Notes under the pieces: model-generated | What the model was told of the DNA's origin: nothing | Seen by the model: only the letters and a program-made list of their open reading frames with translations | Databases searched by the model: none | Translations under genes and position numbers: made by a program | Shown: piece by piece, positions 3,371-63,471 of the stretch | Layout of the letters: each line of letters starts with the position of its first letter | Position numbering within the stretch: position 1 is the first letter of the stretch | Source of the DNA: Marsupella aquatica | Taxonomy: Eukaryota; Plantae; Marchantiophyta | DNA: 64,000 nucleotides | Reading direction: 5' to 3' | Assembly (NCBI GenBank): GCA_973895155.1 | Contig: OZ316899.1 | Location: 4,591,241 to 4,655,240, forward strand

Positions 3371-3985
3371 CGAGTGAGGGCAAGATTTTGAGTGAGAGCA
3401 AGACTTTGAGTGAGGGCAAGATGCCGAGGTGAGAGCAAGATGCCGAGGTGAGGGCAAGATTTGGAGGTGAGGGAAAGATGTCGAGGTGAGGGCAAGATTT
3501 GGAAGTGAGGGCAAGATTTCAAGTGAGGGCAAGATGTCAACGTGAGGGCAAGATTTGGAGATGAGGGAACGATGTCAAGGTGAGGGAAAGATGTCGAGGT
3601 GAGGGACAGATGTCGAGGTGAGGGCAAGATTTGGAAGTGAGGGCAAGATTTCAAGTGAGGGCAAGATGTCAACGTGAGGGCAAGATTTGGAGATGAGGGA
3701 AAGATGTCAAGGTGAGGGAAAGATGTCGAGGTGAGGGAAAGATGTCGAGGTGAGGGCAAGATTTGGAAGTGAGGGCAAGATTTCAAGTGAGGGCAAGATG
3801 TCAACGTGAGGGCAAGATTTGGAGATGAGGGCAAGATTTCAAGTGAAGGCAAGATGTTGAGGTGAGGGCAAGATTTGGAGATGAGGGGCAAGATGTCAAA
3901 GTGAGAGCAAGATGTCGAGATGAGAGCAAGATGTCAAGATGAGAGCAACATGTGGAGGTGAAGGTAAGATTTTTGAGGCGAGGCA
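3371..3985. repeat. Minisatellite of 18-19 bp monomers (TGAGGGCAAGATNTNNAGG) with a ~132 bp higher-order unit, just inside the Helitron 3' end
   Basis: Direct inspection. The spurious ORF 3337-3891 repeats a 44-aa (132 nt) unit, SSPNLALTLTSCPHLKSCPHFQILPSPRHLSLTSTSFPHLDIFP, about three times. Confidence 0.95.
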
Positions 3986-4104
3986 AACATGGTTGTGCAT
4001 TGCAAACTATATTTCAGGCAAAAAGTCAAAGAGATTAATACAAAAGTGATACAATCTTTATTTAGGTGTTCAATAAAGAACCTCATCATATACAACATTT
4101 TTTG

Positions 4105-14314: not shown

Positions 14315-14657
14315 TGTTAGGTATTTACTCAAGGTCTAGGGTTACGACATGTAACTATAGTTAGGCTAACCATAGTCAAAGATGTGGTTAGGTTACCTAG
14401 GATGCACACTATATGCCAAGCGGTGTTTGCTTGGATAAGTGGAACTTAGGCTCAATGTTACGGAGCCACTTGAGAGATGAGGAGAGCTTCCACTATGGAG
14501 ACTTGGTATAGCCGACGGGCTTAGAGTTTAGTAAAGCTCTCTTGTGTGTTCCCGTGAACATAGCCTCGAGGAGGTGAACCACGTATCTCTTGTGTCGACT
14601 ACTTGCGCGTTGGATGTGTCATGTGCTTACCATTGTGATTGTCGTCTATGCTCAAAA
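14315..14657 (+). repeat. Copia 5' LTR (343 bp)
   Basis: Starts TGTTAGG and aligns along its length with 33447-33784 (TTACTCAAGGTCTAGGGTT...GTCTATGCTCAA). Confidence 0.93.
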
Positions 14658-14659
14658 AT

Positions 14660-14671
14660 TGGTATCAAAGC
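14660..14671 (+). other. Primer binding site (tRNA-iMet type)
   Basis: TGGTATCAAAGC, 2 nt after the LTR; canonical form is TGGTATCAGAGC. Confidence 0.9.
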
Positions 14672-18206: not shown

Positions 18207-18959
18207 CTTGGAGGGGAGAGCCTTTAGGGCCCTTGCCGGTGACGAGTGTATATTTGGGTTCTTTGGTGGTTTTTTCCTTTGTATTTTTTAGGGGTCCCCA
18301 CACTTTTGTGTGTTTATACACACACAAACGTGTGTATACACGCACGTTTACTCACCCCCAGCCCCATCGATCCGTTTTCCCCCCGCCACCCCGCCCTCCT
18401 TGCTGCCTACGCGCACCACGGACAGTTTCCCCCCCTCACATGCCCTTTGTTGCCCGCCAGCAAGCCTGCCACCCACAGGCTTTTGCTCCCCGTCCAGCGA
18501 TCCTCTTTGTGGCCGTGCTTTCTCGGCCGGTGCCTCCTGCCTGTACGCAACCGCCCGATATCCCACCCCGGCTATACGCCTGTTTTTTATAAAGGGGCTT
18601 TAACCCCCTTTAGGCCTTATTTTTATTTCTTTTCCTCCCTCTCCATTGGCTGCCGCATCTCGGGACCTGCCACCCTCCACTTTAATCGCTTGAACAGGGG
18701 GAACGGCCCCCTATGAGCCCTGCTGCTTTGTGCAAGAATATTCCCAAAAAATAGAGAGCATGTTTTTGCCCTTCGTCAAAGATTCCGTCCGCCAAATGGT
18801 AATTTTTTTCATTTGTCTTTGGCAAGGAGGTAGCCATCAGAGTTGGCCACATGGTGCACTAATCAAATTGCATTTTTGATGTCGGGTACTAATTCACATT
18901 TTGGTTATTCCCCAAGGTGGTCAAAATGGGGGAGAATTCACTAGTACATTTTGAGGCAT

Positions 18960-19375
18960 TTTACCGATTGTATTTCCATCGGACGCCTTCAGGAAATCCG
19001 ACGCAGAAATCTCACCTGTCCGATACCAAAAGAATCGCATTTTCCAATATACTTTGTATCGGAAAACAACAATCGAAAACCAATTGAAACTACCGATACC
19101 AAAACATTCGGGAGTTCCGTCCTCTAAACTGTCGGAAAACACTATGTCCGATGCCCGTTTAATCGGATGTCTGTTCCACGCATTTTTTGTTAATGGAGGC
19201 GTCCGATTCTAGACCGATATTCTGGACATGGAAATGCCCGATTGTTTTAACATCGGAAATGTCCGATTTTGTTTGGAATGGAAATTGCAATTATAGTAGA
19301 ATCAGACTTTGCGATACGTTTGGGATGGAAAAGTACGATGATTGTGGCATCGGATATGGATCGGTATCTATCGAA
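18960..19375. repeat. CACTA left subterminal repeats (ATCGGA/TCCGAT, both orientations)
   Basis: More than 15 ATCGG/CCGAT motifs in ~400 bp. Confidence 0.9.
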
Positions 19376-19732
19376 AAATATTTGGCGAGCTTGATTGGGC
19401 CTATTTTAAATGAGGGGCTAATTGGGGGTTTAATTGGGGTGCAATTTAATTCTTTAACTGAGTTTTTATCTAGGGTTTAGAGAGGTTATTTAGTCAAGAG
19501 AGACTATCAATTTTGATTGCACACTATGTACCTTGAAACCTGGGCATGACACGGCGTAACTATATCTTATATACAAAAATGAAATATCCAGGGCAAAAGT
19601 ACAAAAAATGGAGAACATCTCCATGCATAGTGCCAGCTATGCTAAAGGCTGGGCATATCAAATGGACATAATGCCCTCCAACTATCCACCTTGCTAGCCT
19701 GGTACTAGATCTATATATGTCTACCTAGTCCA

Positions 19733-22300
19733 CTATCCATACAAGCTATGTCGCGTCTTCCTCTTCTTCACACGGGAACGACTAGGCTGCTCTGCTCTAT
19801 GAGTCTCTACCGCTGACACCCTAGGTAGCACATCATGGTCGTGGCTACCTGATCTGTCTCCATCGTCATGTGGATGAGGTGCAGAAGCAATCTCTGGTAC
19901 TCCCCCACCTCCAGATGCGCCTGAATTGTCGCGAACCAGCTGGTACACTACCAGGGCCAGCCTAAACTGACAAGGTGCAACAACTCCACCACTACCCCCC
20001 TCAGGACGAGACTCACCTCCACCACTACGGCCGGAACCTCCAGACTGGATGCCTACACCACCACTATGAACAGGAGATGGTGTGGGCACATGACCACCAA
20101 GGCCTCCCCCGGACTGTCGTGAACCAGCTGGTACACTACCAGGGCCAGCCCTAAACTGACGAGGTGCAACAACTCCACCACTACCCCCTCAGGGCGAGAC
20201 TCACCTCCACCACTACGGCCGGAACCTCCTGACTGGCCAACGACACGACCAGTATGAACACCAGCCCGTTGTCGAGACCCACCTGGTACAACACCAGGGC
20301 CAGTCCTCACTCGACCACCTGCTGTGGCTAGAACTCCGGACTCACTTCAAACCCCTCGGTTGTGACCTACTGTGGCTGGAACCTGGGACTCACTCCGTCC
20401 ACTCCTACCGGCTAATCTCTGACAAGAAGGAGGCATATCACCTGCTCTATGCTCCATCCGGCGAGTGGAGCCACCTACACCCCGACCAGACTGGTGACGT
20501 CCACTCTCTCGGGGTCCTGACCGGCCACGCGCACCAGTAGAACCTCGTACTGGAGCCTCAGCCACACTCCCCTCTGAAGCACTATCATCCTCCGCATCCT
20601 CCTCGTCCTCCTCCCCCTCACCATCCTCCTCACTCTCCAAGTCCTCCTCACCCCCTGACTCATCCTGCACATAGTAAACAATCTCAAATCCATATGTCAT
20701 TCCGCAACATACGTACCAGCATGAAGCCATCTTTCAAATCATTCTAATATCCGCACTTACCGAGGCCAACATGTCGTCCATGTGAATCTTTAGCGCCCGA
20801 GCACCATGCTCCTTTGCCAGCTCTCTCTCTGCCGGCAACAATGGTTGTCCGTGCTCTCTCTCCTACACACCCAAACCATATGCCACCCCCAATACTAAGG
20901 TCAATTATAGCAACCCTACCCTGGCCTAATTAAACACCTATATAAACCCTTCACCGTCAAAGACCCATAAGAACACTTAGCCGTTCATGCACAAACTATT
21001 CAAAAATTTGAATATGTCCGATACTAGTAGAATCGGTACCCTCGACAGTTCCAATTCTTTTTTATTGTCCGATGCTGCATCCGATACTTAAAGGATCGGA
21101 CTAGAATCGGACCTTACATGCCAAAAGCAAAAAAAAACTAAGGCATGATTGAGCAACCTACGGGCATACAAAGACCTGTCCCGGGTTTGGCAGGGTTAGG
21201 CATTCGTCAATTGGCCTTAGGTGATTAGGGAGGAGGAATGCTGCTGAAGGAATGCATGGAGAGGAGGGGAATGGAGCACTTACAAAATCGGCCTTGAGAC
21301 GCTGTGATCCGCCTTGCCCCATTCTGTGAGTAACCTTTGGCCTCTTTGTTACTCTCAGCAGAGCTTTCATTAGCCAGGATGGTGGGTCTCCAAGCACGGC
21401 TGATTTTGCTGACCATTCTTCAAGTTCTTGATGCATGGGTGCAGTATTCACCATCTCTCCTTGTTTAATCTTCTTCTGAGCTGCTTGAATTTCAGCTTCC
21501 CAGCGTTGTGTGGCTTGCCAAGCTCGAACCTACAACTCTTCTTCAAGCCAAGCACACCAAGCATCCTCAGGAATCTCACCGGCTGGGCTTCCACCTTTCC
21601 TGATCACCTCCTCATCCAGTTTGCATTCAGCCAGGTACTTTTGCATCTTCTCTCGTACATGATTTTGCATGTCTACAAGTGAGACTAAGATCTTTTGTTT
21701 AAGAATCGATCGTCCACAAACGACCCATTCAAAAATCTCTCTTTGATTTGCTCTCGAATTCAAAATCTCTCATCCTGCTTCTTCTTCCCCCAGTAGTCCA
21801 TCAGGCCAAAATGAGACCTCACAATCTGCCTAACTTGACTCCCAAACAAACGATAACTCCTGGAGAGTGGAGCACCTCTCTCATTCAGAAACAATTTTGG
21901 CCTCTTGGCCCTATCCTCTGCCTTCTTTTGTTCCTCCTGAATTCTCTGTTGTTCTGCAGCCCGAGCCTCCCTCCTTAGGCTCTTCTCCTTTTGTCTTGGT
22001 GATAGGGCTTCCACTGGCCTCTCTCTCTCATCCTCCCTAGTGTTACGTTTCCTCTTCCTCTACAATCTCTCCTCCTCGAGTCTGGCTTGGAAAGCTTTTT
22101 CTGCATTAGTGATGGCTACCTTCTAGGAGCTGTCGATCAGTCCTTGAGTGAGCTGAGCTACCTGCAATGCAACCTCCGGCGAGAGCCCCACCTTCTCCCT
22201 AAACAATTGAGCCATGACTTCACCATAGCTGCTTGATGGCCCGGCACCATCTCCCATCCCTCCCGCATTCCCTTCCATCGCTACGAGCTCCGCAAAGGTA
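19733..22300 (-). pseudogene. CACTA second gene, TnpA/Transposase_24-like, multi-exon, divergent from TnpD
   Basis: Pieces 22014-21760 and 21763-21530 (GEIPEDAWCAWLEEEL) read through a TAG into 21454-21283 (KVTHRMGQGGSQRLKADF|GTAAGT donor). Next exon EREHGQPLLPAERELAKEH (~20870-20770), then an acidic, G/R-rich tail. The W...H-x-x-G-x-x-G pattern matches TnpA-like proteins. Confidence 0.6.
19936..20235. repeat. ~110 bp segment duplicated at ~190 bp spacing in the TnpA-like 3' exon
   Basis: CCAGCTGGTACACTACCAGGGCCAGCC...CACCACTACGGCCGGAACCTCC at ~19936 and ~20125, with a partial third copy at ~20281. Confidence 0.85.
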
Positions 22301-23343
22301 TCGTGAAATGCTCCCGATGCTTCTCTCGACTAGAGTGCCTTCGCACTTTAGTTGGGTGACCTAAAAACCCAAAGTGCATAATGTCCAATACTTTCTGCAT
22401 CGGAAACTCCGATTCTAGGTCAATCGGACTAAGTATCGGACCCCTCCTCCAAAGTATCGAACTTAACCCTCCCAATGTATTTTCTGATGGTTTGTGAATC
22501 GCATGACCTTGGCATTTGGACTTTGGCATTTGGATCCCATGTATACTATAATGTCCCCCTTTATGTTAGTTGGGGGTTAATTATGCTATATTGTGGGCTT
22601 ATTAGGTGTGCGATGCAAAACAGGCATATCAACGTATAGTTGTCGTGACAAAGCTAGCACACTATTTTTTGGTGGGTATGGATGATCATTGAATGTATGT
22701 ACCCAGATCTATTTTCAGTTTGATTTTAAATGATTCCCATTTTGACCATGAGGCAATGCTATATGCATGGTGCAACTTTTGGGGACTATAAGAAGTCACA
22801 AATTAAATTAACACTCTAGTGCCGTTTTGTGCAGTTTTGTATTTTTTGTTTTTGGAGGGTCGGGTCGTTGCTTTTCCTTGGTTTTCTTAGTAGGGTTTAT
22901 TTTTGCCAATGCATTATGCACAGCGAGAGTACGCGCATCCAAAAGGTATGACATATATGATCCTCCAAAATGTATTGAAAATATTTGACATGATATATGC
23001 GTTATTTGTGGGAGTTTATAATTGGACATCCAACTCGTCATTGATTTTTATTAATTTCAATAATTATTGGTTTGTTACTTAGGTTTGCATGTATGTCATC
23101 TCATCTTTCAACTTCCCCACCTACCCTGTATGTGCAGGTTTTTTTGGATTGGCCTTAGCATATAGTCTAAGGCTTAGAGCCTAGTAGGCACTATAGAGCT
23201 CGGATATCATTCAGGTACTAATTAAGTCCAACACTGCAAATTATTAACATACTATATATTTCCTGTTTGGGTTTACCTCAAGTTAGGGTGATGAATCAAT
23301 CTTGCATTTTGGTAAAGACTTGTTTGTGTGTAATTGGCAGACA

Positions 23344-23574
23344 ATGTCGACTTCTGAGAGTTTGGATATAGATTCCGACTCTGACTTGTCTTCCTCTGAG
23401 GGGGACATTCCTCCTCCCCCTCAACAGCCTCGAGCACCCCCTCCATTAGGCCCTATTCCATGCTGGTGTCTTAGATGTAAAGGACTGGTGGTTCATCAAG
23501 CGTGGCAGTCCATTGAACACATCGAAAACTATGGTCGACATGAGGGTGATTTACCAGGATATTCAGCTCGCCAG
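23344..23574 (+). CDS. First coding exon with CACTA transposase-associated zinc-finger (CxCxxC...H)
   Basis: Acceptor GGCAG|ACAATG at 23340 and ATG at 23344. Encodes PCWCLRCKGLVVHQAWQSIEHIENYG, resembling the TnpD N-terminal CPCxxC...HLxxxG motif. Donor CAG|GTATTG at 23574/23575, phase 0 (77 codons). Confidence 0.75.
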
Positions 23575-23684
23575 GTATTGCTTGACATGAACTCCGCTAT
23601 ATATGATACACTATCATAATAGTTGGCTGGTTTGAGACCTTTTAGGAGACAAGTATTAATTTTTGTTTGTTTATGATTGAATAG

Positions 23685-24647
23685 GTGCCTTGTAGGGCCC
23701 GTCCTCCATTGGTCTCTAGTCAACTATGGCATGATGCATTCCTAGCTGGTGCTAGACAGTTGCTTGCATCATCAATTGAAGACCCCGAGCAATCATTTAC
23801 CCCCGCACATGTTCAGGCAGATGTTGTTCATGAACCCATAGTGGTAGAGTTGGGGCATGGTAGGGATGATGCACCGCCCCCTACTAGGGTTCTACGCACA
23901 AGACCACGTTCTCATAGACATCGACAACAACATGTAGTTCTAGACACAGACCCATCCCATGAGCACTTTAGAAGGAGTGTTATGCCTCCACCAGGGGAGG
24001 AGTACATAGAAGTTGAAGGGAGGTTGGGCTTATCATATGTGACGGGAAAGGCAATTAGTGTCTTCAAGGATTTTGACCCTGAGAGTTTTGCGATTCCTCG
24101 TGGCCTAGCCATTGATATCCCTGTACATATATGGGGTCGGCAATGGATAGTGAAGGCATCGACCCTTGGCGGGAAGGTTGGATTAGGCTTATTTGCTTTG
24201 GAGGACATTGAGGTCCCTCCAAAGCCTTGGCGTCGTGGCTATGATGGGGAACACCTTTTCCCTTACATTGGGCCTGTGTATACATCCAAGAGTTGGAACA
24301 TCCTCTTGCGCCAACATCCAGCTTGGGGGGTATATGCATTGCAGATGGACTCAGACCCAGATGAGGTCCTAAGGAGGCCTTGGCATTGTAGGATGATTGA
24401 TGGGGACCCTGTGCGTTTAGATAACATAGTTGGGTACATCAATAGTACACATGGTAGAGGGAGTGGACTCCAGCCTAATGTAGAGTGGGCTCAGATTTTT
24501 GGCCCACCCACTCCGCCTTACTATGTCACACATATGGATGATCATGTTATGACAGTAGCCATACGGACCATTAGGGCGGGTGATGAGTTGTTTTGTGACT
24601 ATGAATGGAACGCACCCAAGATGGGCATTCGATCTGGCCACACTTAG
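23685..24647 (+). CDS. SET-domain protein exon (putative lysine methyltransferase) inside the CACTA
   Basis: Uninterrupted 320-codon frame after acceptor AATAG| (23684). SET motifs lie in order over 24144-24608: VKASTLGGKVGLGLFALEDI, LFPYIGPVY, YALQM, IDGDPVRLDNIVGYINST, PNVEW, VAIRTIRAGDELFCDY. Confidence 0.85.
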   Translation: MPCRARPPLVSSQLWHDAFLAGARQLLASSIEDPEQSFTPAHVQADVVHEPIVVELGHGRDDAPPPTRVLRTRPRSHRHRQQHVVLDTDPSHEHFRRSVMPPPGEEYIEVEGRLGLSYVTGKAISVFKDFDPESFAIPRGLAIDIPVHIWGRQWIVKASTLGGKVGLGLFALEDIEVPPKPWRRGYDGEHLFPYIGPVYTSKSWNILLRQHPAWGVYALQMDSDPDEVLRRPWHCRMIDGDPVRLDNIVGYINSTHGRGSGLQPNVEWAQIFGPPTPPYYVTHMDDHVMTVAIRTIRAGDELFCDYEWNAPKMGIRSGHT

Positions 24648-24755
24648 CACATATGTGTATTCCCCATTTTTGAAGTAATATAAGAATATTGTAGTTTTTT
24701 AGGAACCCATGGGCTAACTCAAACGTATATATCTGTTTTGTGCGTTGTATGATAG

Positions 24756-27700
24756 AATGCATATGTTGAGCCGGATGTTGGGGTGTTACCACGAGCTATG
24801 TGCCAACACCTTGTGCAGGCCATGGAAGATTGGCGACATGCCTCTCTACCACCAGATGGCAATCCGGATGTTCCAAAGCAGGAACCAGATGCCTCCCAAT
24901 CAAGAGTTGATGAAGATAGGGCCATGGATGACTTGATGCACCAATTCTATGACATAGAGGATGCTGATCATGACATGGCTGATGGGGAGAACATTGAGGT
25001 CCCACTTCCACATCAAGAAGGTTCAAGGAGTTCAGCCTCCAAACAGTGGGAGGAAGCACGTCAACATGCGCAAACTCGGATATTTGATGGATCACGCTTG
25101 TCTCATCTTTCAGCAATAATGTTGTTGTTGAACTTGCAGCAAAGACATGGAGCAAGCAACCTACTTCTTGATGATCTCTTTCGGACATTGCATGATTGTA
25201 TCTTGCCAGAAGGAAAAAACTTGCCAGACTCTTGGAAAGAGGCAAAGAAGGTGTTGAAGTCCATAGGTCTGCAGTACGAAGTCATACATGCTTGCGTGAA
25301 TGATTGCATTCTGTTTAGAGGCACTTATAAAGATGCAACGTCATGTCCTACATGTGAGAAGCCGAGGTATCGTGAGGACATGTTGACGGGAAAAGTTCCT
25401 CAGAAGGTCATGAGGTACTTTCCTCTTATACCTCGTTTGCGCCACCAATATAGATGTGCTGAGTTGGCTGAGTATATGGTTTGGCATTCCCAAAATCGCT
25501 CAGATATGAGTTCACAACCACCCACCATGCGCATGATGGTTGACTCCCCTGCAAACAAGTTTGTGGAGGAGAGATGGGGTGAGTTCCAAACTGACCCACG
25601 TCATGTTTGCCTAGGATTGGCAGCGGATGGCATCAGCCCATTTGCACTAGTAGGTAAGGCCCAACCATATTCACTATGGCCAGTGGTCCTTACTAATTAC
25701 AACATCCCTCCATGGATGTCCATGAAGAAGGGTCATTTGCTCCTTTCGATGATTATCCCTGGTCCTAAGCAAGTGAAACAATTGATGTGTACTTGCAACC
25801 ATTGATTGAGGAGCTACAAAAGCTTTGGAGGGGTGTGGATTGCTATGATGGTCGAGTGCAAATGGGGGGCTTACGTCAAGAATTTAAGTTGAAGGCCATT
25901 CTTATGTGGACCATACATGATCTTCCATGTATGAATCTTTGTTAAATTATCCCTTCCCATAGCTAGGCAACCGTAACTAGCATACTTTGTTATGTATTGA
26001 GTTAGCTAGGAGCACATATATCTTTTAATAAACTTATTTACTTATGCATGGGATATATATTTATATGCAGGGTTTGGATATATTTCTGGCCTGACCACAT
26101 CAGGATATCGAGCTTGCCCAACTTGTGGACCTGATTTGGAAGGAATAGCACGGCCAAAGTCAAAGACCTTGAGGAAGATAGTGTATATTGGTCACACCAA
26201 GTACCTCCCTCCAGACCATGATTGGAGGAGAGACCCCTGTTTATATGACACTGAGGATGGCCAACCAGATAGACGACCACAACCTATTCCAAAAGATCCT
26301 GCATATTGGAAAGAGGTATGGGAGAGAGTATCTAATCCAGATGACCCATTGCAGTATGCCCAGTGTGGCATGACTTGTTTGTTTGCATTGTCACAACTGC
26401 CTTATTGGGCTGAGATGCCACTTAACCATTTATTTGACCCTATGCACATTGAGGGAAATGTTGGGAGGTCCTTGATTCCCCACCTATATGGAGAGAAAGA
26501 CAACAACTGGAGAGAGAGTTGTGAACAGATGGGGATGCATGGACCTCATGGTTTTTGGCCATCTATGGATCCCAATAATGCCCCCCTTACTATTCATCCT
26601 CCTTGGGTTTTGACACGAGGTGAGCGGACCGAGTTTCGCAAACACATAGGGTCTATGCGATTTCCTACAGGGTATGGTGCCAATCTTTGCAAGGCATTTG
26701 GTGGACTTGACTCTCCAAAATGGCCAGCTTTCTTGAAGACCCATGATTATCATCGCTTATTGCAACATGTTATTCCAGTTGCTATTATTGGATTGGGTAG
26801 TGAGGATCTTTGTGATGCCCTTTGGTCGTTGGGTAAGTTGTTGAGATGGGTGTGTCAAAAGGAGGTGAACAAGGATGAGGTTGCAGCAATGGAGGTGTTT
26901 GGAGTGGAGGTTGTGTGCAAACTTGAAAGGGCCCTTCCTCCTTCATTTTTTGATGGTCAGGTTCATTTTCTACTACATCTAGTGCGTGAGGTTGGTATTG
27001 CAGGCCCTATACATTGTCGTTGGATGTACTGGGTAGAGCGGTACATGGGAGTGATGAAGTCCTATGTTTCAAATCGCGAAAGGGTGGAAGGTAGCATTGT
27101 TGAGCGTCATCTTGGAGCAGAGAGCATGTTTTATTGTACAAACATTATTGCTACACTTGATTCAAATGCTCCAAGGGGGTGGATAGATGAGGCATCAAGA
27201 GAAGCAGACTATAAGGATGACCGTTTGACAGGTGCAAAGGGAGAACGGCTTCTTGACCCTAGTGAGCGCACTAAACTCACTGCATTCATGTTGTATAACT
27301 CTCCAGAGATTGTTGGGGAGTGGACCACATTTTATGAGGAGGATAAGCACAATAGTCAACGACCACGCTTATTTCCCAAATTCCACATGTACATGAAGGG
27401 GAAGTTGTTAAAAGTGGATGCCTTGGTGGCTGCTGGGGAGAGTGTATCACACTTCCCAATGGTGACTGATAAGTTGTGCACCTTGGTTCATGGACCTCTA
27501 CTTACAGTTACAACCAGGACTGCCATGTGGTCCAAGGGGAGACACTTTCGTGTGGAACAACTTGATGACAAGAGGGCAGCTACACAAGATTGTGGGGTGA
27601 TGGGTTGGTTCACCCAGGATTCTGTAAGTAGCAGATCTCACACAAATCCCATCCGTTCTACTATAGCTCACTATGGAAAGATAGAGGAGATCCTTGTTGT

Positions 27701-28022
27701 AAAATACCATGCGCATACAACATTGGAAGAGATGGTGTTGAAGTGCAAATGGTTTTGGATGAACCTTGTTGGCCACAATCGGACATGTGAAGAGGATGCT
27801 TGCGGCTTCACACGACTGAAGACAGGGGCTGTCATCAGCTCAAATTGGAGGGCCTCAGATCCTTTTGCATTTCCTCATAATCTTGAGCAGGCATTCTATC
27901 TCCCTTATCCAGATGATCCTGAGTGGTCCATTGTAATGCCTTACATTCCTCAATCCCGATCCATAGTCCAAGAACAGCCAAATGTAACTATTGTGGAAGA
28001 TTTGGAAAATGAGAACAACTAG
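24756..28022 (+). pseudogene. tnpD: CACTA TnpD/TNP2 transposase (Transposase_21, DUF4218, DUF4216 regions), one frameshift
   Basis: IHACVNDCILFRG, KVMRYFPLIPRL, LGLAADGISPF, YSLWPVVLTNYNIPPW, IIPGPK, then a frameshift near 25780 into IDVYLQPLIEEL...LMWTIHDLP. Intron ~25929-26070. Then GYRACPTC, DPMHIEGNV, KTHDYH, PPSFFDGQVHFLLHLVRE, RWMYWVERYM, VEGSI, YGKIEEI and DPFAFP. Confidence 0.95.
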
Positions 28023-28312
28023 CTACTTAGGAATTTCATGGTAAAAGCTAGGTAGCTAGCACTAGCTAGACCTAATTAATGACCTCTTCCCTCCATGTAT
28101 TGATTTTTTCGGCATATATATGTTATCTACATTGTCATTACCAACTTTTTTGTTGCATGTTACTTTACTTATATATACCACTTAAATCTCTGGGCTCTAG
28201 CTGTGGCTATATATTTGTGCTTTTAATATATATGAAATGAAAGCTTCCAATTCATTTCAAATTGACCCTAGTTGAGTTCCCACATACTTCAAATGGAAAT
28301 GGAGTCAAAAAC

Positions 28313-28810
28313 CTATCGGAAACACAACATGCCTTAATTAGAAGCTAGCAAGATGATAAAACCCTCAAAAAACCCCGGCTCTACTGAAAACCGATATTTC
28401 CAATATTCAAAGAAACGGAACTCATGTGCCATACTACAGGTATCGGGAAACTTTGCCATTTTTACCACATCGGAACCAACGTCCATTTGTAATGGTTTCG
28501 GACAAAAGTCGGAACACATTTCCAATTCCACAAATATCGGAAACTTTTTGTCCCTCAGTTCATCTGAACCAACATGCAATATTTTCTTTATCGGATGCCT
28601 CTTGCGTCGCGGCAATCTCACTGTCCGATGCAGGTAGAATGGGAAAGGCTCCGATAGTTTTTAAATGGGAAACTATTTCCGATTCTAGTAGTATGGGACA
28701 GCATGTGTCCGATGTAGAATGTATGGTAAATCCCCGATGCGGAGACAATCGGAGAGTACCAATCTTCTCTGTATCGGAAAGTGTTGTCGACCGAAAGAAG
28801 AGCATCGGAA
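28313..28810. repeat. CACTA right subterminal repeats (ATCGGA/TCCGAT)
   Basis: More than 12 ATCGG/CCGAT motifs in ~500 bp. Confidence 0.9.
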
Positions 28811-29060
28811 AAACCCAAAATATGTACCAGTGATTCCAAATTTTACCCACCCGACCAAAAAAATGAATAAGTTTTACGTTGGAGTTTTGGTTTTGATTCT
28901 AGTTTTCAACGTTGGAGAGCTAGGCTTGTGGGCTACGCGGCAATGATAAGTTTTGAGTTTTTTTGAAGAAGTTGAGAAAACGTCATTTTTTCTTGCATTC
29001 TCACATGAGTCATTCGGAGGAGATTTTTGAAGATGTGGAGCTTGAAGCACGAAGATCACC

Positions 29061-32000
29061 ATGACGGTTGAGGTGGAGAGAGAGGAGCAAGGGGAAGCGC
29101 ACGTGACACCGATACAATCATCGGTGCAGCGAGTAGAGGGGGTTGTAAAGGAAAAAGAGATGGCATCCAGGTTCAAAGGTGTCAAGTTTGAGGTGGAAAA
29201 GTATGTCGGGCATACGGACTACTTGCTCTGGGAAAAGCAAGTGAAAGGAGTTCTTTGTGCTATGGACCAAGATCATCTTCTCTCTACACAAAAGATGTAT
29301 GATGATGAGGAGGAGATTCCCCTCAAGAAATGGAGGCAAGAACAAGTAATTGCAGTGAATGCAGTGATGTTTTATCTGAAGCCGCATATCATCAAAAAAA
29401 TTGGATGACTATGCAGATTGTGCATCTCTGTTCAAAGCCCTAAGGGAGAAGTACTATCGGGAGGATGCATCAGACCGATTGTACAAGAATTTTCTTTTGA
29501 TGAGCCTTAGGCTCAAGGAGGGGAACAAGCTTTAGGATCACTTAGATGAATTTGATAGTCTAGCTGTTGATTTGTCTAATCTTGGTAAGGGCGTTGAAGA
29601 AAAGGACAAGGCCTTGCTTCTTCTCAGTCCTTACCCCCATCTTATCAGGGTTTGAAGCAGGTTCTCTTGTATAGAGACCTGAAGTTTATTTCGTACGATG
29701 AGGTGGTAAGCTCTTTGCTGTCAGATGATGCATAGAAGAAATTGTGTCAAACCCAAACAGCATCGTCATCTGGTGCTGCTCTGAATGTGAATCGTGGGAG
29801 GTCACACCGGCGTCCCGAGCAACGCACGAATGGCAAGGGACGAAGTAAATCTAGGACAAGATTTTCTTCAAGGGGGAAGTCCCAGGAGAGAAAGCCAGTA
29901 GTCTGCTAGAAGGGTCACAAGGTTGGTCACATTAAGAGGGATTGTAAAGATAAGGCAGTTGAATCTTCATCAGCCAATGTGGCTAGTGTTGATGGAGAAG
30001 TTGATTAACTCAATGATGATATGTTTTATGAAGCCAAGAGTATGCCCTGTGCACATCATCTAGGAGAGTAAACAATGTGTGGATTCTTGATTGTGCTTGC
30101 TTCTTTCACATTTGTTATATTCACGAGTATTTCAACTCTTACTCTGTGTCAAACGGTTCAGTTTTGATGGAAAATGATCATTCCTGTCGAGTTGAGGGTA
30201 TTGGGTCTGTAAAGATTCAAATGTTTGATGACATTGTGCGCACAATATTTGGAGTTAGGTTTGCACTTGACATGCGTAAGAATTTGATTTCACTCGATGT
30301 GTTGGATACAAATGGGCATCAATGACAAGTAATTGATGGTGAACTTCAAGTCATGTAGGGAGAGACATTGATTTTGAAGGGGAGTAGATAGAAGAATTTG
30401 TATATGTTGTAGGGCAGTACAATATGTGGAGAGGCCAATGTAACCAAGTCTCACAAGAAAATGACTCAACTGTGACATTCACGGTTAGGCCACATGAGTG
30501 AGAAGGGTTTGGCTATCTTGCGGAAGAATGGGCTCATTTTTTATTTGCAATCTTGTAAATTGAATGTCTATGAGCATTGCATTTTTGGAAAGTAGCATCA
30601 TCATGCTTTTGGTGTTGGAACTCGTTGTTCCAAAGCGGTTCTTGAGTACATACATAGTGACGTGTGGGGACCATCCCCAACTCCCTCACACTCTAGATTA
30701 CTATTGATGATTACTCGAGATTTGTATGGATTTATTTTATGACCATTTTTACGAAGTGGAAGGCCCCAGTGGAGAATCAGATGGGAAACACGATTAAGTG
30801 TTTGAATACAAGGGTGAAGAGTCTGAGGTCAGAAAATGGCGGGGAGTACACTTCAATAGAATTTGAAGAGTATTGTGTAGAACATGGATAACTCGCCATC
30901 TCACCATAGTTTATACTCCGCAACAGAATGGTGTTGCTGAGAGGCTCAATTGAACATTGTTGGAGCGGTCATAGAGTATGCTGAGCCAATAAGGTTTATC
31001 ACAAGAATTTTGGGTAGAAGCTATCAATACTGTAGCTTATTTGGTAAATTTTTCTCCTTCTAGTGTAATCCATTTCAAAACACCGTTTGAAATGTGTTAT
31101 AAGCCGCAAGCAGATTATCATGGCTTGGTAGTTTTTGGAAGTGATGCATATGCTCTCATACCAAAGTATAATAGGACCAAGTTGGATCCTATGTCCAAGA
31201 AATGTATTTTTCTTGGGTATCAGAGTGGTATGAAGGCCTATAGGCTATGGGATCCTATTACCTGTAAGCTTGTTGTCAATAGGGATGTTTCCCTCAATGA
31301 ATCCAAATTATTTAAGGAGAGGATGAATACTCAGGTCTCCCATACTGACAAAGGAAAATATCCTATCTCGGATCTTGTTGAGAGGGAGATTGATCATGAA
31401 ATGCATGATCGGAGAGAATGAAGTGCTCCAAACATGGAGCTAGTTCCTGTGCCAGAGGAACAAGAGGAGTTTGTTGATGTTGGTGAGCAACAAGTGGATG
31501 CTGCTAAGCTTCAAATTGTACTAGTAGACGCAATTCAATCGGAGTCATCAACTAGAAGAACATTTGGTCGCACTGTACGCGCTCCTCCTAGGTATGGACA
31601 GTGGGTTGATTCATCTAAATTGCAAGAGGACAGTTTTGCAGTTGATGATGAGGGTGACACGTTAATTTTGGAAGAATGAGAGCCTTCTTCATTTCATGAG
31701 GCCAATGCTTCAAAGGAGAAGCAAGAATGGACTGCAACAATGCAAACAGAGATGCAGTCACTGAAGAACAACAGAACGTGAGAGCTTGTTAAGTTGCCTA
31801 AGGGTCAGGAAGTGGTGGACAACAAGTGGATTTACAAGCTGAAGGATAATTCAACAGGAGGTGGATCAAAGGTCTACAAGGCTAGGTTGGTAGCCAAGGG
31901 ATTCACACAAGAGAAAGGTGTGGAATACAATGAGGTCTGTTCACCAGTTGCTAAATACTCTACAATATGGCTATTATGTGTACTTGTTGTAATGTTTGGT

Positions 32001-33253
32001 TTGTTGCTAGATCAGGTGAATGTTGTCACAACTTTCCTCTATGGCACCTTGGAAGAGGTGATATTTATGAGACAGCCGCTAGGTTTTGTGAAGAGAGGAC
32101 AGGAGGAAATTGTTTGTAGATTGTTGAAATCCTTGTATGGGTTGAAACAGTCACCAAGATAATGGAACAAGCGGTTTGACGATTGGATTTAGACACAAGG
32201 TTTTCACAAGAGTGTGTTTGACCCTTGTGTATATTTGAAACTGGTAAAGAATGTTGTCTTTGGGTTCATTATTTTAGTACTTTATGTGGATGACATGTTT
32301 ATTGCGTCTGAGATTGTTAAGTTTCAGCCACTGCTCAATGCAAAGTTTAAGATGAAGGGCCTAGGGCCAGCTAAGAGGATTTTGGGTATGCAAATCACTA
32401 GGGACTTGGAGGCTGGTAAGCTATGGTTGACACAAAACAATGATGCGAGGAAGGTAATTGCTAGGTTCAACATGGGGGATAGTAAGCCAATAAGTACCCA
32501 TTTGGCTGTACACTTCAAATTGTCATCAACTTTTTGTCCCACAGATGCGATAGAGATGGGGCTGATGTCAAAGGTTCCTTATGATAAGGCAATGGGAAGT
32601 CTCATGTATTTGATGACTTGCACTAGACTTGATCTTGCCATGGCTTTGGGCAAGGTGAGCAGGTACATGTCAAATCCAAGAAAGGTACATTGAGAAGCAG
32701 TGAAGTGGATTATCAGGTATGTGAAGGGTACCATGGATCATGGTCTTTTATTTGATGCAAATGAAAAAAATCTAGATCATTGATTGGCTATGTAGATCCT
32801 GACTATGGACAAGATCTGGACCAAAGGATATCAACAACAGGGTACGTGTTCACACTTGGCGGTGGATGCATAAGTTGGAGGTCTACTTTGCAGAAGTGTA
32901 TTGCTCAGTCTCCTATAGAAGCAAAGTATGTTGCAGCAATGGAAGCAGCAAAGGAAGCGATTTGGTTGGATAGACTTATCACTGAAATGAGATTGCCACA
33001 GGGGAATGTGAAGCTCCATTGTGATAGTTAGAGTGCGCTCCACCTTGCTGTGAACCAGGTGATGGACAGTAGAGTGAAGCACATAGACGTCAGGTACCAT
33101 TTTATCAGGCAGGCTTTGTCTAATAATTTGTTTGAGCTAGTCAAGATAGACAGTAAACTCAACCCAACTGACGCATTTACCAAAGTGATTCCTTTGGAAA
33201 GTTTCTCTAGACATCGTGACGTGCTACAAGTTTTGCAATTGCATCACAAGTAG
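29061..33253 (+). pseudogene. Copia gag-pol (gag, Zn knuckle, protease, integrase, RT, RNase H), many stops and frameshifts
   Basis: KFEVEKYVG, GHIKRDC, WILDCAC, RLGHMSEKGL, HSDVWGP, KKCIFLGY, YKARLVAKGFTQ, LLKSLYGLKQSPR, LYVDDM, GYVDPD and KHIDVRYHFIR. Confidence 0.95.
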
Positions 33254-33446: not shown

Positions 33447-33784
33447 TCTTATTACTCAAGGTCTAGGGTTATGACATGTAACTATAGTTAGGCTAACCGT
33501 AGTCGGAGACGTGGTTAGGTGAACTACGATGCACACTATATGCCAAACAATGTTTGCTTGGATAAGTGGAACTTAGGCTCATTGTTACGGAGCCACTTGA
33601 GAGATGAGGAGAACTTACACTGTGGAAACTTGGTATAGCCGACGGGCTTAGAGTTCAGTAAAGCTCTCTTGTGTGTTCCCGTGGACGTAGCCTCAAGGAG
33701 GTGAACCACGTATCTCTTGTGTCGACTATTTGTGCGTTGGATGTGTCATGTGCTTACCGTTGTGATTATTGTCTATGCTCAAGA
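33447..33784 (+). repeat. Copia 3' LTR (338 bp)
   Basis: Aligns with 14315-14657 and is followed by the TSD ATTCC. Confidence 0.93.
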
Positions 33785-34800
33785 ATTCCCAGATGCATGT
33801 CATTTCCTCTTCAAAGATTTGGTGACAACGTCTCCATTGAGAGGTGCCCGTCTCTCTAAGTCAAACTTGGCAGCGTTGGACAATAGCATATTTGTTGCTT
33901 CTTCAAACAACTTGGGGGAGCCTGCCTGGTCCGCTGACCGGAAAGCCAATTCCCAAATCGTTGGACCTTTTCCTCTATTCAACCCTTTCCGATACGTAGT
34001 GTAAGCTGCAACCTTAGAAATAGCTTGATTTTGGTCCATTTCACATGCCTCAAAGAGCCCAACCTTGTTTTTCATTACCCACGCTTTCATACTTGCGTGA
34101 ATGGACTCTGATCTTGTACAGTTAGGAATCTTAGCTCCTTTGGCACTCTTGTTTTGCAATAATATAGATTAAAACGCTTGTTAAGCAACAAGAAAATACT
34201 AGCGCCAGGCGCTAGAGAAGTGGAGCCGGTACCTAGAAGTAAATATTTGCAATGTAGATGACGGGACGGCTTATTGTGTCCAATTGTGTCATCTGGCAAT
34301 TGGAATAAATAATAGTGCCAGGCGCTAGGAATAAAGGACACTATGGTATTGTAAAATTCAACGTTTACACTGTCAATACAATCATTCTGTAATTTTACTA
34401 TACCAGCACTTGGCGCTAGTAATATTCCAAAAATGAAGAGGAAAATAAAACAACTTACCAAACTAATAAAATTTCCCCATTGCCTCCACTTGACAACCCA
34501 CCAAGAAATCCAACTCTAAAGCATTTGAAGCTCTCCTGGGACATGGTTACCGGACTACCACCACAAATCAATCTCCCTTGAAAGTCGGTAAGCCTCTACA
34601 AACATGGAGGCATTTCGCATTTTATCCCAAAGCCTACGATGCTTTGCTTGACTCTCGTCCAAGTAACACTCCTTCAACTGAATGGTGATGGAAGGCTTGG
34701 TAGAAATGGAATGCGTCTGTTTGCTCACGCTTTGGGTTTGGATGCCTCCAAAAAAGATGTTTTGGGTTGCCAACCACCCAGCTTGGGCGTTGTCCGCCAT

Positions 34801-35087
34801 GAAGCCATGAATGATTGGATTTTCTAACCGATTCTCCTGGGACACCTCAATCATTAGTCTCCAAGCCTTCTCAAAGGACTTGGTATCCTCAATTTTTAGT
34901 TTGCAGGTGAATAAAGTACACAAAGCACGATAGTTGTGGTCGTAACTATGTGCACTAAAAGTAACCCAATCTTTTGTAAGTCATTTCATCACATCATGAA
35001 GCCATGAATGATCGGATTTTCTAACCAATTCTCCTTGGACACCTTAATCATTAGTCTCCAAGCCTTCTTGAAGGACTCAGTATCCTC
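34801..35087. repeat. 197-bp tandem duplication within the MULE transposase; copy 2 (from 34998) is split by the LINE and resumes at 39904
   Basis: GAAGCCATGAATGAT...AGTCTCCAAGCCTTC at 34801 and 34998. TTTTTAGTTTG...CACATCA at ~34890-34995 and ~39906-40010. Confidence 0.85.
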
Positions 35088-39753: not shown

Positions 39754-41699
39754 CTACCACCATTCCGACAGGAGTGTTAACTCCGAGTGTATTTGACACT
39801 CCCTAGATTACTGTAGCACTTGGTCAACAGCAATTCCGCAAGCAAGGTCGGTCAGAACAGTCTCCACGGGGGGTGTGTAGGATTGCAGAATCAGAGTATC
39901 CTCGGTTTTTAGTTTGTAGGTCAATAAAGTACACAAAGCACAATAGTTGTGATCGTAAATGTGTGCACTAAAAGTAACCCAGTCTTTTGTAAGTCGTTTT
40001 ATCACATCAAAACTTACCCATGCACCTTCCAGACTCCCACCAGGTTGCATTTGTCTCAAAAGATCAACGCCTGATTTATGACTGATCAAAGTCATCTTGA
40101 ATATGTGAGGACGGTCTCCTTGAGATCCTTGACCTGGTAGGAGGTACCTTTGGAGGAAAGGCATGTTGATATTTCTTTGATATTGAACAAGAAAATCTAA
40201 TTCACCACGACCTTTCTGGTCCTGTCTAAGACTACAGAAAAGGGACGCAAAATTTGGGGGTGTAGAAACTACCACGAGCGACTCAAAAATCTCTGTATCT
40301 TCAATATCTTGAATATCTTCCATACTTTCACACAAGGACTTCACAAAGGACCATGTCGCAACATTTTTCCTTCCAATTTCTTTTTGATAACCTCCTCAAA
40401 AATCTTCTCTGCGCTCCTCAAAAATACCTTTCTTGACGGATGGTTGTGGATACCCATATGAATTGCTAAGCGGGACATTTGAGTACAGGTTTTTGAGTCA
40501 AGTATAACCTGAGGGTACATGTAAAATAACCATGCTAGACAGGAACACAAAATGGGACCTGATCACAAAATTGGCAAACAACTTCACCTTCATCAATGAA
40601 TGAGCCAACACGATGTTGCCCGCCCAGTTTGGGGGTTCCAGCCCAAGCCTTTTGGTTCCTCCTTTTCTTCCGCCAAAAATAGTCACAACTATTATTCCTA
40701 CACTCAATGAAACCCGCGCACGTTACTTTACCAACTTCCCAATATTTTTTGGGCTGGACGTTAGCTAATGTAGGAAATATTCTGGTCCAGATGTAGCAAT
40801 CTTTTGACCGGTCCATGTTGCATAGGTGTGACCCCTTTGAAAGAGCTCTCGGTGCAGGAGGCAACTCAAAATACAACATTTCCATTGTATTTCTTTGGCA
40901 AACAGTCGACTTGCTCATGCCAAAAGTCCCCAACTCCGATGAACCTTGAGATTTCATTGAAACCAGTTGACTTGAGAATGGTATCCATTGCACTTCTCCG
41001 ATACATGGTGCATTGCAAGATTGAGGACTGCCAAAGGAGGCAAAAAGTCTCCAGTCCTTTCACTAATCCAAAAGGACTGTCAACGGCCAAGATTAGCACA
41101 TCTAAAGTCAAAAAGGACTTAAACAAATCAAATGCGTATAAGACGCATTCATTAGTATTTCAACTCCTGAGGTAACCCCTTTCTTGTTGCAACTATAATT
41201 TATGAGTGAAGGACAACCGATTTTCTAGGAGAGTGCTGACGCTATTAGTTCTGCATGGAGGACTTTTCAAAAACAAGGAGTCAAAGTCCTTTGGGGAAAC
41301 TCATTTTTTGTCCCGACATGTAATTTATAGTTGGACAACTAGTTGTGTGGGAGAATGTCGTCGGCGCTACTAGTTCCGCAGGGAATTTTGAAAATATAGG
41401 AGTGAGAGTCCTTCTCACTTAGGCGCAAGCTACAATTTGTTCAGAAAGTATCAAAGCCGAGCGCAAGGGTCCATACTTACCCTTGTGAAGCACAAGATGG
41501 ATGCCTCTGTGAGAATTCACTCAAGAGTAGTTGTGCGATGATGTGAGATTCAAGATGTTCTAATTTGTGTTTCCTTCAAAGCATGGGGAATGAGCTCATG
41601 CAAAAAGCAGGGTAGGGTTTACCTAAAGCTCTGCCAAACATCCAATCAAGCTGCAAATTTAATTTGCGTCTGAAGCTTTGCGGATGACATTCAAATCCG

Positions 41700-44199: not shown

Positions 44200-45460
44200 A
44201 CTATCTAGGCCTTCAGGAAGCACTGTTGAATCCTTGTCAAGTGAAGTCTGGCATGAGAAACGAGTTGAGTCCTTGGCAAAGTACTATCTAGTTAATCACT
44301 AAGGACTATATAGTCCTTGACTCAGGAGTATGGATAGCAGTGAAGTCCTTAGTCAATTGAAGTACTTTACTCCTTGGATAAAAACTATACTCCTTAGCCA
44401 AGGGCTTCACTAAGCGTCAAGGACTATATAGTCCTTAGCCAAGGACTCTACTCCTTTGCCCAGGACTATATAGTCCTTATCAAAGGACTTTACTACTTTG
44501 TAAAGGACTATAGTCCTTTCTGAAGGACTTTACTACTTTGTAAAGGACTATAGTCCTTTCTGAAGGACTTTACTACTTTGTAAAGGACTTCAGTCCTTTC
44601 TAAAGGACTTCACTCCTTTGTGAAGGACTATTAATAGTCCTTACTCGAGGACTTTACTACTTTGTAAAGGACTATAGTCCTTACTCAAGGACTTTACTAC
44701 TTTGTAAAGAACTATAGTCCTTTCTCAAGGACTTTACTCCTTTGTGAAGGACTATTAATAGTCCTTACTAAAGGACTTTACTACTTGGTAAAGGACTGTA
44801 GTCCTTACTCAAGGACTTTACTACTTTGTAAAGGAATATAGTCCTTTCTCAAGGACTTTACTCCTTTGTGAAGGATTATTAATTAATAGTCCTTCCCCAA
44901 GGACTTTACTCCTTCCCCAAGGACTTTACTCCTTTGTAAAGGACTATAGTCCTTTCTCAAGGACTTTACTCCTTTTAAAAGGACTACTAATAGTCCTTGG
45001 ACTTTACTCCTTGGTACGGGCCTTTGTAACGGACTATAGTCCTTACTCAAGTGTTTACTCCTTTGTAAAGGACTATAGTACTTACTTAAGGACTTTACTC
45101 CTTTGTAAAGGACTATAGTCTTTATTCAAGGATTGTAGTCCTTATTGAAGTACTTTGCTCCTTTGTTTAGGACTTTAGCCCTTGTGTAAGGATTGTAGTC
45201 CTTATTGAAGTACTTTACTCCTTTGTCGAGGACTGTCTTTAGTCCTCATCCGAGGACTAAGTAGTCCTTCGATAAGGACTTTAATCCTCTGTCAAGGACT
45301 ATAGTCCTGGGTTGTGTTACATCTATAGACTAGTCCTTTGTCAACGAGTGAAGCGCTTTGACCAAATGATTGTAGTACTCCTCCCCGATGAACTTTAGTC
45401 CTTAAGCTTTGCTGGTAGTCTTCCAATGAGGATTCCAACCCTTACTGAAGGACTTCAGTC
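44200..45460. repeat. Intronic array of palindromic motifs (AAGGACTATAGTCCTT / AAGGACTTTACTCCTTT)
   Basis: Dozens of GGACT and AGTCC/ACTCC half-sites with ~17-19 bp spacing and ~35-75 bp higher-order units. Confidence 0.92.
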
Positions 45461-63000: not shown

Positions 63001-63471
63001 ATTTTTTCAATCCAATTGGTTTGCCGACTTGTGTAGGTCTTCACTCTTATACTGGATATATTTTGTCAAGTTTCCTTCAAGGGAAAGGTCCCAAAGGATC
63101 CAAGATTCAAGCTATTATCAAGCGCTGAAGATCCTTCAATCTCAAACCTCATTGGGCTCCAATCTTTGAAGGCAGATCATTGTCCTAAACTGCACTTTAC
63201 TGGGAACACCCAATTGCCGGTTGGTTTTATGCAAATTGTCATTGAACTTTTTACAATATCGAGGGATATTGTTATGGATTGGACCGTCGGTTCTAGTAGT
63301 ACATTCATTGTTGGGGATTACTCTGGCCGTTTTGTCATTGGATTGGAAAATCATCGGGAGTTTGTTGAGATTGCTTCAAGGATTTTTTTGGACCTCATTT
63401 CTCCCAAACCTTTGGAGACACAACCTCCCCCTCCTCAAATAAGTGGATGGAAAAAGAAAGATAGACTTTGA
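60060..63471 (+). pseudogene. Multi-exon gene: ParB/Srx-like N-terminus plus C-terminal N6/N4 DNA methyltransferase-like domain
   Basis: KMFYVFDGNHQLYAW (DGNH at 60478, ParB GxHR-like). FLLDDGMLAIL at ~62757-62790. Last exon from TGTAG|63037 reads QLPVGFMQIVIELFTISRDIVMDWTVGSSSTFIVGDYSGRFVIGLENHREFVEIA, matching the KP...L...T..GD.VLDPF.GSGTT...GR..IG.E tail of the N6_N4_Mtase family. In-frame stops are present. Confidence 0.65.

Follow-up and report, generated by a model that had tools for sequence, protein, structure and literature searches.

The window analyzed here, a 64,000-nucleotide stretch of the genome of the liverwort Marsupella aquatica (GenBank assembly GCA_973895155.1, contig OZ316899.1, positions 4,591,241 to 4,655,240 of the forward strand), contains a CACTA/EnSpm DNA transposon of 9.9 kb at 18939-28832, flanked by a 3-bp ATT target duplication. 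From left to right, the element holds a minus-strand gene, a spacer of ~1 kb, a short first exon with a zinc-knuckle-like motif, an exon encoding a SET domain, and two exons of a TnpD-type transposase (Table 1). We favor, with moderate confidence, the reading that this is a structurally complete but dead copy of a liverwort CACTA family, that a SET cassette is built into its transposase transcription unit, and that the zinc-finger (ZnF)-SET methyltransferase encoded there tunes chromatin.

Several features identify the element as a CACTA transposon. Its terminal repeats are of the CACTA/CACTG type, and the similarity of the two ends extends inward past the terminal 11-mer with a 2-base indel. 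The left junction reads ATT/CACTAGTACAT (18936-18949) and the right junction ATGTACCAGTG/ATT (28822-28835), in agreement with an earlier interpretation made from the letters alone (hereafter the sequence-only reading), which had described a complete CACTA element with both terminal inverted repeats and an ATT target-site duplication. With at most one mismatch, the terminal 11-mer occurs three times in the window, against 0.68 occurrences expected by chance. The subterminal short repeats expected of CACTA elements are present as ATCGGA/TCCGAT clusters inside both ends. Of the 40 such motifs in the window, 30 fall within 18978-28804, 29 of them in the subterminal clusters; they concentrate in two zones (18978-22435 and 28315-28804), and the element ends lie just outside. 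Since the 3' end reads CACTG, a strict search for long, matching CACTA...TAGTG end pairs passed over the true pair; the ATCGGA clusters led to the ends instead. The transposase has the TnpD-type composition of Transposase_21, DUF4218 and DUF4216, though it is broken by one frameshift.

Table 1. Features of the CACTA element, in window coordinates
Feature	Position	Strand	Remarks
Target-site duplication ATT, left copy	18936-18938	.	read from sequence; same as 28833-28835
5' terminal inverted repeat CACTAGTACAT	18939-18949	+	10/11 bases shared with the 3' end
5' subterminal ATCGGA/TCCGAT cluster	18978-19349	.	smaller clusters at 21017-21106 and 22399-22435
Second element gene	~19733-22281	-	oriented away from the transposase; 4 or more premature stops
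Exon 1, 77 codons from ATG	23344-23574	+	phase-0 end CAG/gt; zinc-knuckle-like motif
SET exon, 320 codons	23685-24647	+	acceptor aatag/GTG; TAG stop 24645-24647
Transposase (TnpD) exon 2	24756-25928	+	acceptor atag/AAT, phase 0; N-terminal half of Transposase_21; donor T/gtatga
Transposase exon 3, intact	26071-28022	+	Transposase_21 tail, DUF4218, DUF4216
3' subterminal ATCGGA/TCCGAT cluster, 11 copies	28315-28804	.	motif count
3' terminal inverted repeat, reverse complement CACTGGTACAT	28822-28832	-	ends at 28832
Target-site duplication ATT, right copy	28833-28835	.	read from sequence

The SET exon and its predicted activity

The sequence-only reading had pointed to a stop-free exon of 320 codons with the SET motifs in order, and had proposed a profile search and structure prediction as checks. 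The frame is open as described. The first 100 residues of its product form a poorly conserved basic linker, and residues 100-310 comprise an N-flank and the SET core, within which all the motifs named earlier follow in the order given: GLGLFA (aa 166-171), Y194-x-G196, IDG (238-240), N247, YINST (251-255) and ELFCDY (301-306). Pfam SET (PF00856), the sole Pfam family matched on the 320-aa product, scores 28.2 bits against a gathering threshold of 22.4 and covers aa 166-306, corresponding to profile positions 1-104 of 105. When modeled by AlphaFold2 from an alignment of 34 family sequences, the product reaches a predicted local distance difference test (pLDDT) score above 90 over most of residues 100-310. 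With this model as query, Foldseek returned 241 PDB matches at E <=1e-3, and the best 50 listed are all SET- or PR-domain methyltransferases, with template modeling (TM) scores by target of 0.24-0.74. SET8, LegAS4, MLL1-3, G9a/EHMT1, NSD1, SUV39H2 and ASH1L are among the structural matches, and the Swiss-Prot models, giant-virus proteins and language-model neighbors recovered for the product are likewise SET proteins. A PDB sequence search with the single SET-exon sequence matched no SET structure, and a family profile was needed; its best PDB match, at E 1e-4, is LegAS4 of Legionella, in which the GxG, YxG, YIN-x-S and N-x-E motifs and the catalytic Tyr align. Both proposed checks thus came out in favor of a SET domain, and the product of 23685-24647, as modeled, is a SET-fold protein and not a chance open reading frame (ORF).

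Conservation among the 34 family members is concentrated in the residues expected of a methyltransferase that uses S-adenosylmethionine (SAM). The SAM-pocket glycines are retained in 33 (G166) and all 34 (G168) sequences, as are G196 and Y199 of the YxG motif (34/34 each), the second Asn, N265 (34/34), E301 (33/34) and the catalytic Y306 (31/34); N253 is kept in 29. The GxG, YxG and ELxxxY motifs are therefore present, the last with its catalytic Tyr, and the same motifs align in LegAS4. The NHSCxPN motif takes a different form. It reads YINS(S/T), the loop that follows is six residues longer before PN, and the Cys is absent. The sequence-only reading had remarked on NST in place of NHS in this copy; the replacement of the His by Ser (NSx) proves to be family-wide, occurring in 33/34 sequences, and in four of the 34 members Gln replaces the Asn. 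There is also no post-SET Cys cluster in the C-terminal flank. The product continues for 14 residues after the catalytic Tyr (family median 8), and in nearly all homologues the stop lies 2-15 codons past this residue.

These departures weigh against an active enzyme and, with the NHS His absent, no Cys-rich post-SET region and a short tail, activity is not to be assumed. The same features, namely His to Ser in 33/34, Asn to Gln in four members, the absent post-SET zinc cluster and the very short C-terminal tail, would suit a SET domain that is conserved but catalytically inactive, serving to bind, for instance, a histone tail or a methyltransferase complex of the host and regulating the element without writing a mark. 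Regulatory, catalytically dead SET proteins of this kind exist, for example C. elegans SET-24 (PMC12886896). We nevertheless judge such a module unlikely, since GxG, YxG, the second Asn and the catalytic Tyr are near-invariant over deep divergence, as selection on catalysis predicts. The chlorella-virus protein vSET is an active enzyme of minimal size. The His is likewise missing (YINFS) from LegAS4/RomA (PDB 5czy, 8swi), reported to be an active histone H3K14 methyltransferase, so that its absence is not a strong argument against activity. LegAS4/RomA is the nearest solved structure by profile, and its GxG, YxG and catalytic Tyr align with those of the liverwort product; unlike the latter, it is an effector with ankyrin repeats secreted by a bacterium, identity is only ~20%, and there is no sign of direct descent. 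On balance, the ZnF-SET protein is more likely than not to be an active methyltransferase. Its substrate is not readable from the fold, because the top structural neighbors methylate H4K20, H3K4, H3K9, H3K14 and H3K36.

The SET cassette in the transposon family

Eight lineages of the element were compared: the window copy, L001 (from Calypogeia), L002, L003, L004 (from Riccia), L005, the group L006-L009, and L010. All eight, those from Calypogeia fissa and Riccia sorocarpa included, carry a SET homologue on the same strand as Transposase_21 and upstream of it, and the gene order is the same even in L010, whose SET domain is only 28% identical. The pairwise identities of SET and transposase are correlated (Mantel r 0.71, permutation p 0.007). 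For the window copy against the Calypogeia copy, omega (Nei-Gojobori) was estimated at 0.21 over the SET domain and at 0.13 over transposase exon 2, values that are approximate because dS is ~1.1-1.6, near saturation; dN/dS among L006-L009 is uninformative, these copies differing by 0-2 substitutions. Contigs from four sequencing runs have similar depth over SET and transposase and comprise hundreds to thousands of variants that are 90-99% alike. Only 90 relatives emerged when 1.84 billion cluster representatives were searched exhaustively with phmmer. Those with names are all from Calypogeia fissa or Riccia sorocarpa, the remainder being metagenome or Logan contigs; Marchantia polymorpha is absent from the named matches and may lack the family. 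None of the 90 is named as a canonical host SET protein, and nothing here points to a recent host donor. A wider profile search recovered family members only.

The sequence-only reading had suggested a genome-wide copy search and dN/dS as further checks, and had itself raised the opposite outcome, in which SET is present in this copy only, is closest to a host gene and drifts neutrally. CACTA elements do capture host gene fragments, and the window copy is dead, as a one-off capture of a host SET fragment by a single, Pack-type copy would allow. Such a capture is nonetheless extremely improbable here: the arrangement recurs in 8/8 lineages, even at 28% SET identity, the divergence of SET parallels that of the transposase, the SET domain is constrained at an omega of ~0.2, the exhaustive search produced no close host SET, and the reads contain many SET-carrying copies. 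Sequence comparison instead indicates that the SET cassette is a stable part of a multi-copy liverwort CACTA/EnSpm family, under purifying selection.

Three further observations concern members and relatives of the family. L006-L009 are four contigs from four samples that are 99.7-100% identical, with all ORFs intact (a SET ORF of 324 aa and three transposase ORFs); their near-identity suggests that the family was recently active somewhere. ATCGGA/TCCGAT motifs like those at the ends of the window element also fill the intron at L006 3018-3256. In Calypogeia fissa, L012 10001-11512 encodes a single-exon, 503-aa SET homologue (P0071; second copy P0111) that is 30% identical over the domain. P0071 has a Cys-rich N-terminus. 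Its neighbors are ordinary host genes (mL59-like and FtsH), and no transposase lies nearer than 10 kb; the gene may be a domesticated copy, a relic or kin of the original donor.

Proposed splicing and role among known transposon systems

Exon 1 encodes an acidic, Ser-rich start followed by a C-x-C-x2-C...H pattern resembling a zinc knuckle, and L001, L002 and L006-L009 retain both this motif and the exon 1 donor. In Calypogeia, the annotated protein P0001 has exon 1 joined to the SET exon at the same junction. A second acceptor, at 24756, lies 108 bases past the SET stop and has the same phase, 0. Three divergent lineages share the donor and the two acceptors, each of them in phase 0. The acceptor of transposase exon 2 and the first residues after it are conserved in L001 and L006-L009. 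In these copies and the window, peptide conservation (N-x-F/Y-V-E/Q-x-D...VLPRAM) begins exactly at the 24756 acceptor, and there is no conserved ATG at the start of the exon. On the simplest reading, one donor would serve two acceptors, and this arrangement suggests alternative splicing into ZnF-SET and ZnF-transposase proteins. Joined to 23685, the exon 1 donor at 23574 would yield a 397-aa ZnF-SET protein ending 14 codons past the catalytic Tyr; joined to 24756, it would yield a ZnF-transposase. Annotated Riccia and Calypogeia transposase proteins start inside Transposase_21 and are therefore uninformative on the junction between the zinc finger and the transposase.

Several observations weigh against this model of the unit. 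The four sequencing runs had the character of DNA: they keep the intron and show no joints where splicing is predicted. Pfam gave no match for exon 1, whose putative roles in zinc binding and targeting are read from the Cys/His pattern. A resemblance of exon 1 to the Transposase-associated domain (PF13963) was considered; the N-terminus of a Lactuca TnpD has no match to that domain. In Riccia, a single ORF uninterrupted by an intron encodes both the zinc knuckle and SET, and two Riccia sorocarpa gene models, P0054 (773 aa, L004) and P0088 (625 aa), join a partial SET to Transposase_21. The Riccia gene structures lend some weight to a different architecture, in which SET is an internal domain of the transposase and a donor upstream of the SET stop yields a single ZnF-SET-TnpD polypeptide. 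This architecture is improbable, given that the stop follows so closely behind the catalytic Tyr in nearly all homologues, that no conserved donor ahead of the SET stop was seen in the window or L001, and that the gene models of P0001, P0023 and P0026 all terminate at the SET stop. P0054 and P0088 themselves probably derive from degenerate copies and may be annotation artefacts; they are also instances in which these elements have been annotated as host genes in the Riccia sorocarpa genome.

Under the favored reading of two spliced products, the ZnF-SET protein would act in the nucleus as a SAM-dependent lysine methyltransferase, as its fold family suggests. The N-terminal module common to ZnF-SET and transposase would bring the former to the element or to the transposition complex. 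There it would methylate histone tails, possibly also the transposase itself, and so tune the chromatin state of the element, an effect that could work against host silencing or else hold the activity of the element itself in check. In a more specific form of this proposal, which we regard as tentative and rather doubtful, a histone methyltransferase has taken the role that belongs to TnpA in En/Spm: guided by the shared zinc knuckle to the subterminal ATCGGA repeats or to the transposase, ZnF-SET would place a histone mark that leaves the element open to transcription or steers its insertion, and would have been kept since before the split of Jungermanniopsida and Marchantiopsida. Transposon chromatin in liverworts differs from that of flowering plants in that H3K27me3 marks transposons.

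In maize En/Spm, TnpA and TnpD are produced from a single transcript. The liverwort element shares with En/Spm the CACTA-type ends, the 3-bp duplication, the subterminal short repeats and a TnpD-type transposase, and its second protein likewise appears to come from the same unit through alternative splicing that shares the first exon. Unlike in En/Spm, the alternative product would be a zinc knuckle with SET, not a TnpA (Transposase_24) DNA-binding protein, and the liverwort element has an extra gene on the opposite strand.

SET domains have been found in other transposons. The sequence-only reading had stated that no SET-encoding CACTA element was known; this is contradicted by the red-algal element Plavaka, whose accessory gene PAG2 contains SET and is proposed by its authors to modulate element chromatin (2025 preprint, 10.1101/2025.02.11.637652). 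Since Plavaka belongs to the EnSpm/CACTA superfamily, the earlier statement was too strong. Both elements thus carry, within the same superfamily, a conserved accessory gene with Pfam SET. Compared by description only, PAG2 differs in being a fusion of an N6-adenine DNA methylase with SET and a separate gene of a three-gene cassette, whereas the liverwort SET stands alone behind a zinc-knuckle exon in the transposase unit of an element with a land-plant TnpD-type transposase; a PAG2-type fusion of PF01555 to SET was not found in the liverwort SET product. Outside the CACTA element, an ORF at 63166-63471 (+) matches Pfam N6_N4_Mtase (PF01555) at 37.6 bits against a cut-off of 26.7. As ParB-like and N6-methylase domains partner SET in the red-algal Plavaka cassette, the genome may hold a second transposon-borne modifier.

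HarbingerS and Phytophthora MuDR families also encode SET histone methyltransferases, as reported by Kojima and Jurka (Repbase Reports 2014, cited in PMC12730594). These are DNA transposons with their own SET gene as a stable family feature, as in the liverwort family; compared by description only, they differ in belonging to other transposase superfamilies and occurring in other hosts (oomycetes and others). Helitron captures of SET genes are also on record. SETMAR, a primate fusion gene of SET and mariner, likewise combines a SET domain and a DNA-transposon transposase in one transcription unit (PMC9062482); it is a single-copy host gene that arose from a mariner landing beside a host SET, whereas the liverwort SET resides on a mobile, multi-copy element.

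With transposon-borne SET genes already on record, the liverwort family opens no new category. An incomplete literature search, which left Repbase Reports outside its scope, found no paper describing SET in a CACTA element of a liverwort or any other land plant. What appears to be new is the combination of host group and element type (a land-plant TnpD-type CACTA in liverworts), the placement of SET on its own, behind a zinc-knuckle exon and within the transposase unit, and the evidence of deep co-inheritance of SET and transposase. The transposons of this family probably carry their own chromatin-modifying enzyme. Transposons with chromatin enzymes reveal how mobile DNA fights or exploits host silencing, and few such systems are experimentally tractable, among them VANDAL VANC and the fungal TET/JBP carriers, alongside SET in HarbingerS, MuDR and the red-algal Plavaka. 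To these is added a land-plant case in which SET is built into the transposase unit, apparently shares the N-terminal module of the transposase, and has been kept over deep divergence. The SET protein can be expressed and assayed, because the near-identical intact copies L006-L009 are available in public data.

State of the window copy and neighboring sequence

The window copy is structurally complete but dead. Pfam Transposase_21 matches transposase exon 2 at 80.8 bits, and the best match of exon 3 is a Calypogeia fissa protein that is 80% identical. The frame of the transposase changes at ~25775-25784, with a 1-base deletion at ~25775-25777, and contigs of other copies from the four sequencing runs carry one extra base exactly at this site, which bears out the frameshift that the sequence-only reading had noted in TnpD. 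The second element gene is homologous to an annotated 532-aa Calypogeia gene (L001 6473-8530, minus strand) and is interrupted by at least four in-frame stops at places where the frame of this orthologue stays open. It had been described earlier as a TnpA-like gene with several lesions; the lesions stand, and the label is unsupported, as Pfam gave no match in any minus-strand ORF piece of the gene or in the Calypogeia orthologue. A TnpA-type second protein (Pfam Transposase_24) was thus not recovered.

Over window positions 23200-28200, most differences between the window copy and contigs of other copies consist of A/T in the former against G/C in the latter (A>G at 30-39 and T>C at 18-30 places per run), and the CpG observed/expected ratio of the window copy is 0.49. 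The A/T bias and the CpG ratio fit the decay of a methylated, silent copy, following the pattern of methylcytosine deamination. Elsewhere in the element there are five lesions in ~1,580 codons. The intactness of the SET exon in this dead copy means little, because ~1.3 lesions would be expected in 397 codons, with a probability of none of ~0.28.

Other repeats lie around the element. Directly to its right, Copia-type gag-integrase-reverse transcriptase ORFs occupy 29061-33031 (+), and a 336-bp direct repeat (14325-14660 and 33452-33787; 92% identical, 19.1 kb apart) flanks the CACTA and Copia elements together; the CACTA element may be nested in or beside a retroelement. A second pair of direct repeats, 34883-34996 and 39896-40009, is 90% identical and 5.0 kb apart with minus-strand ORFs between, and may represent the long terminal repeats of another retroelement. 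A repeat array at 44297-45308 was considered as an end of the CACTA element and rejected as part of a different one. It consists of dense ~20-bp units (AAGGACTATAGTCCTT and variants, direct and inverted), starts with CACTAAGGACTATATAGTCC at 44297, and resembles the subterminal region of another terminal-inverted-repeat element. Finally, a tandem array at 3391-3989 has a 19-bp period, with ~30 copies of GGGCAAGATGTCGAGGTGA-like units.

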